Below the pieces are notes generated by a model. It was not told where the DNA came from. It made no database searches and worked only from the letters and a program-made list of their open reading frames with translations. Of a DNA stretch of 6,558 nt, positions 1-6,557 are shown piece by piece. The stretch lies in the NCBI GenBank assembly GCA_013416795.1, contig RQSC01000027.1, forward strand, positions 769,936-776,493, written 5' to 3'. Both the position numbers and the translations under genes were made by a program. This DNA comes from Prasinococcaceae sp. CCMP 1430 (taxonomy: Eukaryota; Plantae; Prasinodermophyta). Position 1 is the first letter of the stretch; the number at the start of each line of letters is the position of its first letter.

Positions 1-320
1 CCGCCCACCCCCGCACCCAGCCGCGCCATGCCGCGCGCCGCGGCCGCGCTATCCTAAACCCTTATGAACTGCGCGGCAGCGGGAACAGCGCGGTGAGCCT
101 TCACAGATTGTGTCATGCGCAATTGCAATTCAATTACATGTGCAGTAGTCTTACTGTACCAGTGTACATGGGAGTGGTGGGGCGATGCGTGTGATACAGG
201 TCGGCGTGTGGTGCGGTGTGGATTGCGCTTCAGTACTGTACTTCGAAGTGCACGGGCGCGCGGAGGGCGGGAGAAGGAGGGGCGGCGCGCGGTGGCGCGG
301 TGCGGCGGGGGGCGGGGCGG
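1..320. repeat. Imperfect ~40-bp inverted repeat, arms 1-41 and 282-320
   Basis: The reverse complement of 1-41 (gcggcgcgcggcatggcgcggctgggtgcgggggtgggcgg) aligns with 282-320 (gcggcgcgcgg--tggcgcgg-tgcggcgggggcggggcggg), with 11-bp and 8-bp exact blocks. Low complexity weakens significance. Confidence 0.4.
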
Positions 321-345
321 GGGAAGGCGGGTGGGGAAGGGGGGG
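307..345 (+). other. G-quadruplex-forming motif
   Basis: Six G-tracts of 3-7 nt (307-311, 313-316, 318-323, 329-331, 333-336, 339-345) with short loops (1-5 nt). Confidence 0.55.
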
Positions 346-987
346 AGGCGCCTTGGCCGCCGCGCCGCGGGCGGGCTGTGGCGCATGTGCGCGCCAAAAA
401 AAAATCTAGAAAAATAAGATCAAATCGCACTCGACCGCGGCCGCCGAAATCTGTGGCCGCACACACCGCAAACACCGCCTGCTGCTCTGGGGCACAGATC
501 TGCAAACGCGGAATATGTCCCCTGAAAACCGTGGATTCCAAGCATGGAAAGCTCAATATGCAATACGTATCGCGAACGTGTGAGGTCATTTCAAGAATTG
601 AGGGTTCCATTTGGAACCCCATAATGTCAGATCGTTCGTATTTAGGATCCCTTCGCGTCCGCAGGTTCGGCCCGGGCGCGCGCGCGAGCGAATCCGAGCG
701 CGTCCGCCGTTCCCCGAGGCGGCGCTGCCGTTCGAGCGCGGCGCGACGCCCGCACGCGCGCGGCCGAGGGGTCAAGGGGCGCTCGCGGGGCCCCTCGCAT
801 CCCGCCCTTCGAGTCGTTCGCCGACCCCTCCGATCCGCGCATCCGCCCCGCGCGCCCGCCGGCACGGACTCTTGCGAATGAGTTCGCCGCGGATGCTCTA
901 CACGCCGCCGCTGCCAGCCCAGTCAGGGCATGCTAGCTAGTCGCCCTCCTGCCTAACTCCTACAACTTGTGTGCTACGCTTGGCGGC

Positions 988-1896
988 CTACCAGAAGTTT
1001 CGACTCGAACACGCCATCGCGTAGAACTCGTTGAATGCGATGCTGCCGTCGCCCCTTGCCGCCGCCGCCTCGATCATGCGCTCGATGTCGGCCAGCGAAG
1101 GGTCATCGCCAAGAGCCTGTGCGACGCCACGGGTGGGTGCGTTAGCGCTGATGCATCTACACGGGGGCGCGTGCGCGCACGCGCATTTGTACAAACGCGG
1201 ACCCACCCATTCATGCACCCCAATCGTTTGCCCACGCCAGGCCCGACGATGTGCTCGCATGCCGAGCAGCGCCGAGCAGCGAGGACAGCAGCGGCGCGCG
1301 CAGCGCACCTTGAAGAACATGAGCACGTCCTCGGCGTCCAAGTAGCCGTCGCCATCGCTGTCGAACGCGTCAAAGGCCTCCCGAACCTCTTCGATGGAGA
1401 ACTCTGGGCTCGTGGCTTTGCTTCCGCCTGCCCCTGGAGCGTCCTGCGGCGCCGGCCGCGCGGCCCCATCCGCTCCCCCGCCCACGCTGAGGCCTCGCAT
1501 GCCGGCGCGGAGCATCCCCTCGTCGTCGCTGCTATAGTCAGTGTCGCGGCCGGACTCGTCCGCTGCGCTGTCGAATTCCGCGGCACTGCTCAGACTCTCA
1601 TGGTCAGTGTCGTTGCCCGAACCCTTGTCGCTGCCTTCCCGGTAGTACGAGCGTGACGACTGCCAGCCGTCGTCCGCACCGCCGCCGGCGTGGTCCCTCT
1701 CTTGACATACCGCCGAGGCAAAGCGCGAGAGCTCTGGCACGCTCGCAACGACTTGCGCGGCAGACGCGCCACTCGCGCTGAACGAGCCCTTCGGTGTCGC
1801 GAAGGTGGGCGACAAAACACGCTCTTCACCCTCGGGCGAGGGCACCGGGCTGCCAGGGCTGCTGGGGCCTCTCCAGTAGTCCGCGTTCGAGGCCAT
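988..1896 (-). CDS. EF-hand calcium-binding (calmodulin-like) protein with long acidic/Ser-rich disordered N-terminus; 2 exons (1896-1309, 1116-988), 238 aa
   Basis: ATG at 1896 lies in a GCCATGG context. The translation shows EEVREAFDAFDSDGDGYLDAEDVLMFFK (EF-hand loop DSDGDGYLDAED). After removing a GT-AG intron it continues ALGDDPSLADIERMIEAAAARGDGSIAFNEFYAM (second, degenerate EF-hand). TAG at 990-988. Confidence 0.85.
   Translation of the reverse strand: MASNADYWRGPSSPGSPVPSPEGEERVLSPTFATPKGSFSASGASAAQVVASVPELSRFASAVCQERDHAGGGADDGWQSSRSYYREGSDKGSGNDTDHESLSSAAEFDSAADESGRDTDYSSDDEGMLRAGMRGLSVGGGADGAARPAPQDAPGAGGSKATSPEFSIEEVREAFDAFDSDGDGYLDAEDVLMFFKVRCARRCCPRCSALLGMRAHRRAWRGQTIGVHEWVGPRLYKCACAHAPPCRCISANAPTRGVAQALGDDPSLADIERMIEAAAARGDGSIAFNEFYAMACSSRNFW
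1117..1308 (-). other. Spliceosomal intron of EF-hand gene (192 nt, phase 0)
   Basis: Donor AAG|GTGCGC at 1308, branch point CGCTAAC at 1147-1141, acceptor CACAG|GCT at 1117. Removal restores the helix-linker-helix of an EF-hand pair (MFFK|ALGDDPS). Confidence 0.88.
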
Positions 1897-2555
1897 GGCA
1901 CCTGGACGCTTCGCGTGCGCGGGGCACCGGGCGCTCCGCCGCCTCTGCCTCGCGCGCCTTTCCTCCCTCCTGCCCTGTACGCGTCTCTCTGGGCCTACAC
2001 GCGCCGCGCGCGGCCCGCGCGCGGGCGGGGCGCGAGGGGCGAGCTCACTCGCCCTCCCTGCGTTGGCAACGCGCGCGGTTGCGGGCGCGTGCTGTGGCGA
2101 CGCGCGCGCCGGCGCGCCCCGATTCCACGGCACGCCGCGGCGCTGCCGGCGTGTGTGCCTCGTTTCCGAACACACAAATCCATTGCAATTTTCACCACGG
2201 GCGACACTTTTCACATCTGTTGAATGCACAGCTGTGTCGTTTGTCTCCTTCGGCGCTCCAGTCTCTTCTTCGTCTTCGGATGCAGAAATGATCCAAAAAC
2301 ACGCGAAAAATGCCGCCGACAATCCCCCACAACTGACCTTGCGCCGACTGCTTCCGATGATTGCATGGGCGCAGCGCGCAGACGGAGAAGGCGCCTCGAA
2401 CGAAGGGGGGAAAAGACGGGTGCGTGCGCGCGAAATCGTGTGTTTGCGGCAGAGTGGAGGCGCTTTTTCCTTTCCTTGAAGTTTTGTCGATTTTTCCTCA
2501 TCAACAGCCCCCCAAGTACACGTGCCGTGCCGTGCGTTTTTTTATTGGGGGGCGG
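1897..2555. promoter_or_regulatory. Divergent intergenic/promoter region shared by EF-hand gene (-) and nad7 (+)
   Basis: Lies between two head-to-head start codons. Contains AT-richer stretches (~2165-2330, ~2405-2550), a CACAGCTGTG palindrome (2227-2236) and a CACGTG G-box (2519-2524). No individual element is validated. Confidence 0.45.
2507..2553 (+). repeat. Perfect 9-bp inverted repeat GCCCCCCAA / TTGGGGGGC with 29-nt spacer
   Basis: Arms at 2507-2515 and 2545-2553. The spacer holds CACGTG, (CGTGC)3 and a T-run. Confidence 0.7.
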
Positions 2556-3997
2556 ATGCTCCACTCCGCGCGCGGCGCGCAGGGGGCGTGGGTGGCCCCT
2601 GCGCGCGGGGCTCGACGCCCCGGGTGCGGTCGCTCGCCCTCCGCGACCGCCCCCACGAGCTGTGCGCCGAGCGGGGGATCGACGGCATCAGCGGCGCGGC
2701 GCGCGCGGCGGCGGCCGCCGCGGGGGCTGGCGCTCTGTGGGGCGACAGCGCCAGGGCGTTCTCGGCTTCCGCGCTCGCGGAGCCCCAGGTGCCCTTCCCC
2801 GGGCGCGACATGCCCACGCCCTCGACCGCGTCGCTCACGGACTTTTCGCTCAACTTCGGGCCGCAGCACCCGGCGGCGCACGGCGTGCTGCGCCTGCTGC
2901 TGCAGATGAACGGCGAGGTGGTCGTCAAGGCCGAGCCGCACATTGGCCTGCTTCACCGCGGCACGGAGAAGCTCATCGAATACAAGTCGTACATCCAGGC
3001 ACTCCCGTACTTCGACCGCCTCGACTACGTGTCGATGATGTGCCAGGAGCACGCGTACTGCATGGCTGTGGAGAAGCTGACGGGCGTCGAGGTGCCCCTG
3101 CGCGCGCAGTACATTCGCGTGCTGTACAGCGAGATCACGCGCATCCTCAACCACCTGCTGGCGCTGTCGTGCCACGCCATGGACGTGGGCGCGCTCACGC
3201 CCTTCCTGTGGGCGTTCGAGGAGCGCGAGAAGCTCTTTGAATTTTACGAGCGCGTGTGCGGCGCGCGCATGCACGCCGCGTACTTCCGTCCGGGCGGCGT
3301 CGCGCAGGACCTCCCCATCGGCCTGCTCGACGACATCTACGAGTGGTCGACACAGTTTAGCAGCCGCATTGATGAGATTGAGGAGATGCTGACGCCCAAC
3401 CGCATCTGGAAGCAGCGTCTCGTGGACGTCGGCATCGTGAGCGCCGAGGACGCGCAGGCGTGGGGCTTCAGCGGCGTCATGCTGCGCGGCTCGGGTGTCG
3501 CGTGGGATCTGCGTGAGGCCACGCCGTACGAGTGTTACGATCGCATGAACTTCGACGTGCCCGTCGGCCGCCGCGGCGACTGCTACGACCGCTATCTGCT
3601 GCGCATCGAGGAGATGAGGCAGTCGCTTCGCATGATCGGCCAGTGCCTTAACGATCTGCCGGAGGGTGTGTACAAGGCCGACGACGCAAAGAACCAGCCG
3701 CCCGACCGCGCGTCGATGAAGGACAGCATGGAGTCCCTCATCCATCACTTTAAGGCCTCGACTGAGGGCGCGCCGGTGCCGCCCGGGCAGACCTATCAGG
3801 GCATCGAGGCCCCCAAGGGCGAGTTCGGCGTCTACCTCGTGTCGGACGGCTCGCCGCGCCCGTACCGCTGCGCCATCCGTGCGCCGGGCTTCTACCACTT
3901 GCAGGCGCTCAACTTTATGGCAAAGGGCCACCTGCTGGCGGACGTGGTCACCATTATCGGCACGCAGGACATCGTGTTTGGCGAGGTCGACCGCTAG
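2556..3997 (+). CDS. nad7: NADH:ubiquinone oxidoreductase 49-kDa subunit (Nad7/NDUFS2/NuoD), nuclear-encoded with predicted mitochondrial presequence; model exons 2556-2623 + 2692-3997 (457 aa); conserved core 2810-3997
   Basis: Hallmark motifs [58 protein letters not shown] and C-terminal [14 protein letters not shown]. The quinone-site His, Tyr and Asp are present. Codons are strongly GC3-biased, standard code. The upstream Ala/Arg-rich segment ends in RAF|SASA. Gene identity is very secure; the 5' exon structure is uncertain. Confidence 0.95.
2624..2691 (+). other. Putative 68-nt intron in nad7 presequence region
   Basis: CGG|GTGCGG ... ATCAG|C joins the out-of-frame ATG at 2556 to the nad7 frame and removes an acidic segment ([13 protein letters not shown]). 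The donor resembles the GTGCGC donors of the other introns. No clear branch point. Confidence 0.45.
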
Positions 3998-4109: not shown

Positions 4110-5468
4110 TCACTCAAACCAGTCGTCGGTATCCCTCACGCCGCGCACGAGTGTAGCGGCACAGCGGAATTGCCTGGCGTATGCCGCAGCGACCAGCCCA
4201 ACGCCAGACACACTCGCACCGCCCCCGTCCGCGCCCTCGTCTTCGACGACGAGCACGTCGAGCTCGGTGCGTCCGTGGCCCTCGTCATAGCCACTCGCGT
4301 GCACGAACCAGATAGCCGCGGCGCCGGACACGCGTGCCGCGTCCTCTGTCAGGAGATGAGGTGGCCAACTGTCTCGAGATGGTGGCGACACAACCACGCC
4401 GACGTGCGTGGCGCGTTCGCCCCGCACGCCAGAGCCTGCACTCGCACGCGTGCAAGTGCCCGCGCGTGGCAACCGGAGCGGAAACGCTGTCAGCGGTGCA
4501 CTGAAGGGCCATGGGCTGGCAGACAGGCAGGTCAGCATTCGCTCGCACTGGTGTGCAAAGGCTTGCGCGCGCGGTTGCGCACCGTGCGGCCCCTTCCCCC
4601 CGAAGAAGAGCAGATCGCCAGCCACGCAGTGCTTGTACGTCGGGGTGAGCAGCGGCTCACAGCAGCGTTCCTGCATCCAGGCGTCGCGCGCGACAGGCAA
4701 CGCCCGAGGCGCGCGCATATAGCACCATTGCACGAGGCCCGAGCAGTCCCAGCCGCAACGGTCACGCGTCAGGCGCTCATCCCCCGTCGATGCGCCAGCC
4801 TGCGTGCTTGTGTGTGCTCCGCTGCCAGTGCCGCCGCCAGCGCCGCCGCCGCCAGCGCCGCTGCCGCATCTCCGCGGACCGCGCGTGGGCGAGCGTGGAA
4901 CGCCAGCTGGCGGACGGTCTACCGGCTGGCCGCCGCCGCCGCACTCGCCCACGGCCACACCATCCTCACCGTCATCGATGCCGACTCCGGAGAACTCGCC
5001 GCCAACCCGCTCATTTCGCGGCACGGCACCGCCCCACACGTACATTCCCGCGCCCGCGCGATAGCAACGTAGCGCCTCCGCAGCGGCAGCTGCGCGCTCA
5101 GCGTCGGACACCAGCACTGGCACGGACGCACCGGCAATGGCTTCCGTCGGCGACGACGCGGCCGGTGCATGTGCGGTCGACGCACGTTCGAGCAGCACAC
5201 GGGCATCGCGCGCGCGCGCGTAGCCTTCGTAGCGGTCATCTAGTAGAGTGACTCGTACAGCCACCGCGGTACTCGCATCAGCATGAGCACTTGCTTCGGA
5301 GCCGTTGCTGAGGCCCCAGTCGCACCTCACTGGCCGGCCGCCCCACGTCTGCGTCGCGAGGCTCTCACACGCATCGCTTTCCCACACGTCGAGCACGGCG
5401 CCAGCGCGCACGGTGCACGCCGATGCCGGGGCTGACATGGGTGCCGCAACTGGAACGGCGCCTACCAT
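4110..5468 (-). CDS. SH3b + NlpC/P60 (peptidase C40) peptidoglycan endopeptidase, cyanobacterial gamma-D-glutamyl-L-diamino acid endopeptidase type; at least one intron (exons 5468-4583, 4435-4110; ~403 aa)
   Basis: Ordered NlpC/P60 motifs: YVWGG, WDCSGLVQ (Cys 4745-4743), ARDAWMQE, VAGDLLFFG, ATHVG (His 4406-4404), FVHASG (His 4301-4299). The N-terminal LDVWESDACESLATQTWGGR...AVRVTLLDDRYEGY matches, from memory, the SH3b domain of Anabaena/Nostoc PCP (LNLFDSPECTRLATQ...AVEVYLCEDDYPGW). An in-frame TGA lies at 5477-5475 just upstream of the ATG. Confidence 0.88.
   Translation of the reverse strand: MVGAVPVAAPMSAPASACTVRAGAVLDVWESDACESLATQTWGGRPVRCDWGLSNGSEASAHADASTAVAVRVTLLDDRYEGYARARDARVLLERASTAHAPAASSPTEAIAGASVPVLVSDAERAAAAAEALRCYRAGAGMYVWGGAVPRNERVGGEFSGVGIDDGEDGVAVGECGGGGQPVDRPPAGVPRSPTRGPRRCGSGAGGGGAGGGTGSGAHTSTQAGASTGDERLTRDRCGWDCSGLVQWCYMRAPRALPVARDAWMQERCCEPLLTPTYKHCVAGDLLFFGGKGPHGAQPRAQAFAHQCERMLTCLSASPWPFSAPLTAFPLRLPRAGTCTRASAGSGVRGERATHVGVVVSPPSRDSWPPHLLTEDAARVSGAAAIWFVHASGYDEGHGRTELDVLVVEDEGADGGGASVSGVGLVAAAYARQFRCAATLVRGVRDTDDWFE
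4436..4582 (-). other. Spliceosomal intron of NlpC/P60 gene (147 nt, phase 1)
   Basis: Donor CACG|GTGCGC (same hexamer as the EF-hand intron), CGCTGAC branch-like motif at 4495-4489, acceptor GTGCAG|GC with matching phase. Removal brings GDLLFFG close to ATHVG, as in bacterial NlpC/P60. Confidence 0.72.
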
Positions 5469-5793: not shown

Positions 5794-5835
5794 GCGCTTG
5801 CGCTTGCGCTTGCGCTCGCGCTCGCGCTCGCGCTT
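5794..5835 (+). repeat. Hexamer microsatellite (GCGCTY)7 in RAF2 3' UTR, followed by (GTGC)3 at 5846-5857
   Basis: GCGCTT x3, GCGCTC x3, GCGCTT x1, read directly. Confidence 0.9.
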
Positions 5836-5885: not shown

Positions 5886-6557
5886 CTATGCCCAGTACTT
5901 CCTGACCTTCTTGAGCAGATCGGAGACGTCGAGCTCCTCCGCCTTGGCGGCGAGCACAAAGTCGTTGAAAGACGTGCCACCCAGTGCAGGCGTAGACACG
6001 CGCACCGTCAGGCTGTTGGTGTCCTCGTCAATGCTGTAGCCAGCCAACGGGTGGCCCTGCTCGGTCGCAAGCGCCTCGAAGCGCGCGGCCATCTCGGCGC
6101 ACGCGTCCGGGGTGCGGCCGGGCCATGTGCGCTCCAGCGCGTCGCCGGACTCGCTGGGAGTCCACGACTTGACGTTGGCGAGGTTGAGCTGCTTCAGCAG
6201 CACCTCGGCCTCCTCGCCGTTGACGGCCTTCGCCGCGCCCTCAGCCGAGCACTGCTGATTCATCAACGAGTTGCGGTCGAGCTTGCGGATGTTAGGGATC
6301 AGGATCTCGTGCTCGGTGTCGGGATTGCCCAGCACCCTCTCGCCGAAGTTGCTCGCCAGCTCAGCGGCGAAAGGGTCTCGCGCGCCGATGTCACCGAGCA
6401 GGCTGGCGCTTGCGAGGTTGGAGGCCGAGTCTTGCAGCTCAGAACCGCTGGACTCGGCCCCTTGCGTCACGCCGGACGGCCCGCCGCCCTCAGCGGCACG
6501 AGCGGCAGCACGCCTCGGCCGGCGCGCCGCCGCTGCGGGGTTTGCGGCGCCTCCGCG
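5886..6557 (-). CDS. RAF2: Rubisco accumulation factor 2 / pterin-4a-carbinolamine dehydratase-like plastid protein (5'-partial)
   Basis: LLGDIGARDPFAAELASNFGERVLGNPDTEHEILIPN, GGTSFNDFVLAAK and C-terminal KYWA* match recalled plant RAF2/SDIRIP1 (FLGDFGARDP...STEHKILIPN...GGLSMNDFIMAAK...RAWA). The frame stays open to the window edge with an Ala/Arg-rich transit-peptide-like stretch (RGGAANPAAAARRPRRAAARAAE). The true ATG lies outside the window. Confidence 0.88.
   Translation of the reverse strand, partial: RGGAANPAAAARRPRRAAARAAEGGGPSGVTQGAESSGSELQDSASNLASASLLGDIGARDPFAAELASNFGERVLGNPDTEHEILIPNIRKLDRNSLMNQQCSAEGAAKAVNGEEAEVLLKQLNLANVKSWTPSESGDALERTWPGRTPDACAEMAARFEALATEQGHPLAGYSIDEDTNSLTVRVSTPALGGTSFNDFVLAAKAEELDVSDLLKKVRKYWA

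Follow-up and report, generated by a model that had tools for sequence, protein, structure and literature searches.

The minus-strand open reading frame (ORF) at positions 4110 to 5468 of the DNA analysed here (a stretch of 6,558 nucleotides, called the window) is an SH3b-NlpC/P60 peptidase gene, and its host is very probably Prasinoderma coloniale, a prasinodermophyte green alga and marine picoalga with which the window agrees in base composition (67% GC versus 69.8%). Sequence comparison indicates that the gene is intact, spliced and under at least some constraint, that its product has the active-site residues of YkfC-type peptidases, and that its affinity is cyanobacterial. The gene adds a member to a familiar enzyme family in a host where it would not have been expected; a homologous Pseudoscourfieldia marina protein is already in databases. 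The explanation favoured here, which we consider reasonably probable, is that the gene specifies a functional nuclear-encoded peptidase acting on free stem peptides from plastid peptidoglycan turnover. The substrate, the physiological role and the compartment proposed below are extrapolated from the sequence and from analogy with characterised enzymes.

The ORF comprises 452 codons and a stop, uninterrupted as read through a 147-nt segment (4436-4582, minus strand) that an earlier, sequence-only reading had called a GTGCGC-CAG intron. Comparison with homologues and natural variants bears this out and identifies the segment as a genuine, non-coding spliceosomal intron. In this strain it is in frame, stop-free and in phase 1, running from GTGCGC at 4582 to CAG at 4436 and separating exon 1 (4583-5438) from exon 2 (4110-4435). 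The segment, which lies between 'FFGGKGPHG' and 'SGVRGERATHVG', is missing from the homologues of three other algal lineages (P0002, P0005 and P0007). Eight Tara Oceans contigs of the same species, with about 99% DNA identity and the same neighbouring genes, provide a second line of evidence. Variants L088 and L089 have TGG changed to TGA inside the intron, and L090 and L091 share a 16-nt deletion there, to which L091 adds a 1-nt deletion. Intron status is settled because the segment carries these stops and deletions while the splice sites and both exons stay intact in all four variants; such population variants offer an unusually clean proof of an intron without RNA. The exon frame is intact in all eight contigs. 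Furthermore, the density of single-nucleotide polymorphisms is higher in the intron (8 in 147 nt) than in the exons outside a Gly-rich insert (14 in 951 nt; Fisher p = 0.005), and none of the exon polymorphisms disrupts the frame or falls on a motif or signature residue. When the spliced form is compared with a cyanobacteria-only hidden Markov model (HMM), the catalytic core, otherwise matched in two pieces, is matched in one (HMM positions 128-184, 36.5 bits). The GTGCGC...CAG boundary type is the host's own, because the same boundaries appear to enclose an in-frame stretch of a neighbouring EF-hand gene, and a host-type intron within the gene rules out bacterial contamination. Two short Logan contigs (L172 and L173) were considered as transcript evidence and rejected, as they are genomic.

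The true start codon is probably the second ATG of the ORF (Met11, 5436-5438), because the first ATG (5466-5468) reads ATA in two natural variants (Tara L174 and L175), whose ORFs begin at the second. An in-frame TGA lies 9 nt upstream of 5468. Exon 1 encodes the SH3b domain, a helical linker, the YVWGG motif, the Gly-rich insert and the stretch from DCSG to FFGGKGPH; exon 2 encodes ATHVG, a eukaryote-specific insert, HASGYD, the C-terminal strand and the stop codon. The Gly-rich insert, a lineage-specific Gly/Ala/Pro-rich low-complexity region of 86 aa between YVWGG and DCSG (aa 151-236; 4761-5018, minus strand), is predicted to be disordered, with a predicted local distance difference test score (pLDDT) of about 30. 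Its length differs among natural variants, every indel being a multiple of three within a GGC-type repeat, and a 75-nt in-frame stretch (4854-4928, minus strand) is present in the window strain and missing from all Tara variants examined. The insert also contains many in-frame GT...AG pairs, such as GTGCGG at 4944 with CAG at 4822 or at 4861, and part of it may be a second intron.

Alignment and structural modelling place the predicted protein in the AvPCP/NpPCP (YkfC-like) subfamily. The unspliced ORF scores 22.4 bits against the Pfam NLPC_P60 model (PF00877), just under the gathering cutoff of 23 because the domain is split by the in-frame intron and the long Gly-rich insert; homologues P0002 and P0005 exceed the cutoff with 43 and 55.8 bits. 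The spliced protein matches an HMM of 31 cyanobacterial homologues at 70.6 bits, in three colinear stretches spanning HMM positions 16-231 of 239. Among solved structures, the sequence comes nearest to 2evr (NpPCP of Nostoc punctiforme) and 2hbw (AvPCP of Anabaena variabilis), with weak additional N- and C-terminal matches in the order found in those proteins. An alignment of algal and cyanobacterial sequences spans the full length, and its profile, in which 13 of 16 rows are cyanobacterial, matches 2hbw at E 7e-95. An AlphaFold (AF2) model has a mean pLDDT of 64, with 84-93 in the core and low values in aa 153-236 and the intron-encoded stretch. A Foldseek search with this model places 2evr (E 1.6e-10) and 2hbw (E 2.9e-10) at the top, with target template modelling (TM) scores of 0.74-0.75 over both domains; Bacteroides DPP VI ranks next and Trichomonas NlpC far behind. 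Alignment and model also agree on a single SH3b-like domain (aa 16-95; 5184-5423, minus strand; SH3_16, PF18348, in homologues), which contains LATQ and the Tyr80 of 'DDRY' and is followed by the catalytic domain.

The catalytic triad is conserved as Cys242 in DCSG (codon 4743-4745, minus strand), His355 in ATHVG (4404-4406, minus strand) and His390, the third residue, in VHASG (4299-4301, minus strand), in the Cys...His...His order of NlpC/P60 peptidases (MEROPS C40). Eight motifs (LATQ, DDxY, YxWGG, DCSG, RDA, GDLxFFG, ATHVG and HxSG) are complete and in order. The sequence-only reading had described an intact triad and motif order, an N-terminal SH3b-like domain and a colinear match to the cyanobacterial enzymes, and all three descriptions hold.

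Biochemical and structural work on YkfC-type enzymes gives these residues a more specific meaning. In Bacillus cereus YkfC (BcYkfC), the YkfC/DPP VI/AvPCP subfamily is marked by Asp256 and by Tyr118 of SH3b strand D (AvPCP Tyr64), the S1 residues that bind gamma-D-Glu are Tyr226, Trp228, Asp237, Ser239 and Arg255, and the triad is Cys238-His291-His303 (PMC2954226). Enzymes of this type need substrates whose N-terminal L-Ala is free and are unable to degrade intact walls; a single SH3b domain and a missing signal peptide are described as traits of the cyanobacterial members (PMC2954226). In the window protein, Tyr80 (equivalent to AvPCP Tyr64 and BcYkfC Tyr118) and Asp262 (in RDA; codon 4683-4685, minus strand) are invariant across the algal and cyanobacterial alignment, and the S1 equivalents Tyr143, Trp145, Asp241, Ser243 and Arg261 are all present at aligned positions. 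Every residue listed for BcYkfC is kept in the window protein and in three other algal lineages, except at the position of Ser257, which is Ala263 in the window protein and also Ala in AvPCP. The signature residues vary little or not at all among the proteins of the four algal lineages and of cyanobacteria.

These four lineages are the window species, with its many Tara variants, and the sources of P0002, P0005 and P0007, and they place the gene in two deep green lineages, one prasinodermophyte and one chlorophyte. P0002 comes from a metagenome alga of 67% GC and is 56% identical to the window protein. P0005 is from Pseudoscourfieldia marina CCMP1203 (also listed as Pycnococcus provasolii), where the gene sits on a nuclear chromosome of 714 kb with GATA, RWP-RK and APC1 genes around it; P0007, from a metagenome, is flanked by GT61 and DUF3456 genes as in P. 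marina. The window species and the P0002 species show no synteny, the P0002 neighbour not being NDUFS2. The P. marina orthologue (10001-10882 on L003, CP150562.1) is named 'glycosyltransferase' by NCBI (XRB03241.1, XRB17968.1) and 'NlpC/P60 domain-containing protein' by UniProt; the NCBI name is probably wrong and carried over from the adjacent GT61 gene.

Several searches indicate that the nearest prokaryotic relatives are exclusively cyanobacterial. With an algal-only profile, the next matches are SH3_16+NLPC_P60 proteins of about 240 aa (81-110 bits), of which those with a named source are cyanobacterial and one, P0008, adjoins a phycobilisome-related CpeT gene; the remainder score at most 71 bits. 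A local algal-only HMM gives 104-131 bits for 31 cyanobacterial representatives and at most 71 bits for 79 other metagenomic bacterial NlpC/P60 proteins and Chloroflexi YkfC-like proteins, a gap of at least 33 bits. In a collection that represents each prokaryotic species by a single genome, 77 of the 80 top-scoring loci are labelled cyanobacterial, in a scan that is biased taken alone, its patterns having come from a largely cyanobacterial alignment. The three exceptions, two 'uncultured bacterium' metagenome-assembled genomes and one 'Acetobacteraceae' contig, encode cyanobacterial-type proteins. The last of these (L047, CAZZZY010000543.1) was rejected as a non-cyanobacterial relative, since its protein is 93-94% identical to Nostoc AvPCP-type proteins and the contig is probably a mis-binned Nostoc contig. 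Scans with algal-type patterns found no further algal-type members in JGI metagenomes and no viral carrier in viral sequences, in both cases returning generic catalytic-core matches only. A phmmer search of 1.84 billion representatives with the unspliced ORF gave 4 matches; this query is too divergent to find cyanobacterial-like copies, and little weight can be placed on their absence.

In a tree of 41 rows and 239 columns (LG+C20, with a narrowly sampled outgroup of Chloroflexi YkfC-like proteins), the algae group with the cyanobacteria and not with the outgroup (100/99). The algal proteins form a clade (99/96) in which the window protein pairs with P0002 (100/99) and P. marina with P0007 (98/87).

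The active site suggests how such an enzyme would work. The primary transcript would be spliced at 4583|4435, and in the folded product the SH3b domain is predicted to pack on the papain-like domain, leaving the active site at their interface. Tyr80 of the SH3b domain and Asp262 would hold the free amine of the N-terminal L-Ala, and Tyr143, Trp145, Asp241 and Ser243 would hold gamma-D-Glu, so that Cys242, His355 and His390 could cut the bond between gamma-D-Glu and meso-diaminopimelate (mDAP), L-Ala-gamma-D-Glu|mDAP. Likely substrates are tri- and tetrapeptide stems already released from the glycan by an amidase; the intact wall would not be attacked. The proposed role is the breakdown or recycling of peptides shed as plastid peptidoglycan is remodelled, returning mDAP and L-Ala-D-Glu to metabolism, the same step that YkfC performs for the transient peptidoglycan ring of Chlamydia.

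The host setting is compatible with this role. P. coloniale, a thick-walled coccoid alga, encodes all ten core enzymes of peptidoglycan synthesis (PMC7455551), and chloroplast ftsI and ftsW are confined to Nephroselmis, Prasinococcales and Picocystis (PMC4194372). In reviews, the peptidoglycan toolkit of green plastids consists of ten biosynthetic enzymes (PMC10784329), and DipM is the only plastid peptidoglycan hydrolase described (PMC4015805). No paper was found that links NlpC/P60 proteins to algal plastids or lists the family in the plastid peptidoglycan toolkit, as the sequence-only reading had surmised. A bolder version of the proposal, which we put forward tentatively and regard as rather doubtful, is that some early-branching green algae have kept the 'closed loop' of their plastid wall complete, the host cytosol having taken over the cytoplasmic recycling step of the cyanobacterium: the AvPCP homologue, lacking a transit peptide, would cut stem peptides shed from the plastid envelope outside the organelle, and mDAP and D-Glu would be salvaged. 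If true, it would give plastid-bearing eukaryotes their first enzyme of peptidoglycan recycling, and a step of an endosymbiont pathway would have moved to the host compartment.

Several observations weigh against a peptidase of plastid peptidoglycan turnover. No N-terminal extension over the cyanobacterial proteins is found in the window species, the P0002 species or P. marina, and no transit peptide is visible in these three lineages. Counted from Met11, the first SH3b strand begins after only seven residues. A similarly short form (P0139) occurs in the P0002 species, and the P. marina/Pycnococcus provasolii protein is 293 aa long in three assembly annotations. Because there is no N-terminal extension, plastid targeting is unsupported, barring an upstream exon, and the site of action may be the cytosol. 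The searches found the gene in only part of the algae that have peptidoglycan genes; it is probably not a general part of that system, and the association is partial at best. These limited searches, which would miss cyanobacterial-like eukaryotic copies, did not detect a homologue in Micromonas pusilla, Chloropicon or mosses, all reported to have peptidoglycan genes; the co-occurrence with such genes envisaged by the sequence-only reading is seen in the host species, with its ten enzymes. Third-position GC (GC3) is 0.68-0.85 in the peptidase gene versus 0.87-0.91 in its neighbours, which suggests weak codon adaptation or low expression, and no spliced transcript was found among the database cluster members. 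The exon polymorphisms divide into 7 synonymous and 7 non-synonymous changes, a mild sign of constraint. Of the four algal lineages, the window species has the most divergent protein (70.6 bits with the cyanobacterial HMM versus 155 for P. marina), and its 86-aa disordered insert lies beside the active-site loop. Finally, the placement of the algal clade relative to the cyanobacteria is not fixed, because cyanobacterial monophyly is recovered at only 71/61. Inheritance from the plastid ancestor with many later losses, and an old cyanobacterial transfer followed by spread between algae, fit the tree equally. The earlier proposal of an endosymbiont-derived or laterally acquired enzyme therefore stands as to cyanobacterial affinity, and the tree cannot separate endosymbiotic from later transfer.

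Some of these points would also be expected under other explanations. The missing transit peptide, the apparent absence of the gene from several algae with peptidoglycan synthesis genes and the action of the family on free peptides, a form open to uptake (PMC2954226), would suit an enzyme that scavenges foreign murein peptides from dissolved organic matter or from associated or ingested bacteria, as a source of nitrogen, D-Glu or DAP/lysine and without relation to the plastid wall. We judge this unlikely: neither a signal peptide nor a transporter partner is seen, a thick-walled coccoid host (PMC7455551) makes ingestion improbable, the gene-bearing window species has the full set of peptidoglycan synthesis genes, and a YkfC-type site cannot attack intact sacculi. 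Digestion of bacterial prey, the other role offered by the sequence-only reading, fits poorly with the same walled host, the lack of a signal peptide and the need for free L-Ala (PMC2954226). Similarly low in probability is a neofunctionalised hydrolase that has kept fold and triad and turned to another gamma-glutamyl or isopeptide substrate, such as a component of the host cell wall or capsule or a small gamma-Glu peptide. Long algal branches (stem 1.11, internal 1.26), a patchy distribution and clade-specific changes (RDAWMQE for RDAYQQE, some 20 aa inserted between the two His residues and the large loop insert beside DCSG) speak for such a change. The conservation of the binding residues speaks against it, as this would be difficult to account for had the S1 and S2 ligands become different.

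Least probable is that the gene is a decaying relic or an artefact of assembly or contamination. The low GC3, the half share of non-synonymous exon polymorphisms, the large disordered insert and the polymorphic first ATG could be read as decay. On the other hand, the exon frame stays open across the eight Tara contigs while the intron gathers a stop and frameshifts, four lineages retain the catalytic and binding residues, the same gene neighbourhood is recovered in independent metagenome assemblies, and the host-type intron excludes bacterial contamination. Taken together, what the sequence-only reading observed is correct in every detail testable here; its interpretation is plausible and partly supported, namely on origin and enzyme type.

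The neighbouring genes are eukaryotic, which agrees with the earlier view that the peptidase gene is not a contaminant. At lower window coordinates lies a nuclear NDUFS2 (2522-3997, plus strand; Pfam Complex1_49kDa, E 1e-120). It lacks an in-frame ATG before about residue 97. In the region 2556-2692 (plus strand), translation could begin in a different frame with the ATG at 2556; a possible 68-nt intron, from GTGCGG at 2624 to the CAG that ends at 2691, would then restore the frame and add an Arg/Ala-rich presequence. The 49-kDa subunit of complex I is therefore nuclear-encoded in this alga. The pterin-4a-carbinolamine dehydratase gene (PCD/DCoH; 5886-6470, minus strand) encodes a homologue with a long N-terminal extension, and its ORF may run past the listed start. 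The EF-hand protein gene (988-2322, minus strand) contains a 183-nt in-frame, stop-free stretch (1127-1309, minus strand) bounded by GTGCGC...CAG, which we interpret as an intron. This stretch divides the pair of EF hands, of which Pfam recognises only the first in the read-through ORF. GC content is uniform over the window (about 0.64-0.74), and the overall GC of the peptidase gene equals that of its flanks; the host-like composition claimed earlier is upheld in this respect but not at third codon positions. The intergenic DNA that separates the dehydratase and peptidase genes includes a hexanucleotide microsatellite, (GCGCTT/GCGCTC)n (5794-5835), which varies in length among Tara variants. 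A long purine/G-rich tract with GGGGCGGGG-type repeats (255-350, plus strand) precedes an A9 run.

Studies of plastid peptidoglycan have so far been concerned almost exclusively with synthesis, by the ten enzymes, and with DipM, and the fate of the fragments is a gap. The algal peptidase would be the first candidate for a step in which the bacterial wall remaining in the chloroplast is broken down or recycled. It also offers a clonable handle: its specificity could tell whether these plastids make and turn over DAP-type peptidoglycan, and its localisation could tell where wall fragments go. Moreover, its presence in a prasinodermophyte and a chlorophyte bears on the cyanobacterial inheritance of the first green plastid.

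The closest known systems are AvPCP and NpPCP, which share with the algal protein one N-terminal SH3b and a C-terminal NlpC/P60 domain, colinear throughout, the lack of a signal peptide, the S2 and S1 residues including Ala at the BcYkfC Ser257 position, and a three-residue 'GK/YD-x-G' stretch after the third His. They differ in that identity is only 24-34%, and in that the algal gene is nuclear and has a spliceosomal intron. The algal protein also has the 86-aa Gly-rich insert between YxWGG and DCSG, the insert of about 20 aa between the catalytic and third His, RDAWMQE in place of RDAYQQE and a divergent C-terminal tail. Unlike the algal protein, YkfC of B. cereus (3h41) and B. subtilis and DPP VI of Lysinibacillus sphaericus and Bacteroides (3npf, 3pvq) carry a pair of SH3b domains, in some cases together with a signal peptide, and the Chloroflexi YkfC-like outgroup falls outside the clade of algae and cyanobacteria (100/99). 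The NlpC_A1 and NlpC_A2 proteins of Trichomonas vaginalis (6bim, 6biq) are likewise eukaryotic NlpC/P60 proteins with SH3b domains, laterally acquired and of bacterial origin; in contrast, they are secreted and degrade bacterial walls, and they are set apart by a Foldseek E value of about 5e-3, another donor lineage and another architecture. YkfC of Chlamydia trachomatis degrades, within a eukaryotic cell, peptides of a reduced peptidoglycan ring associated with division (bioRxiv 10.1101/2022.11.17.516864). It is the functional analogue from which the role of the algal enzyme is proposed, although it is the product of a bacterial gene and acts in the bacterial cytoplasm. DipM (LysM and LytM/M23 domains; Cyanophora and Physcomitrium; PMC4015805) is, like the algal gene, nuclear and of cyanobacterial descent; DipM acts on plastid peptidoglycan, whereas the algal NlpC/P60 protein would act downstream, on free peptides.

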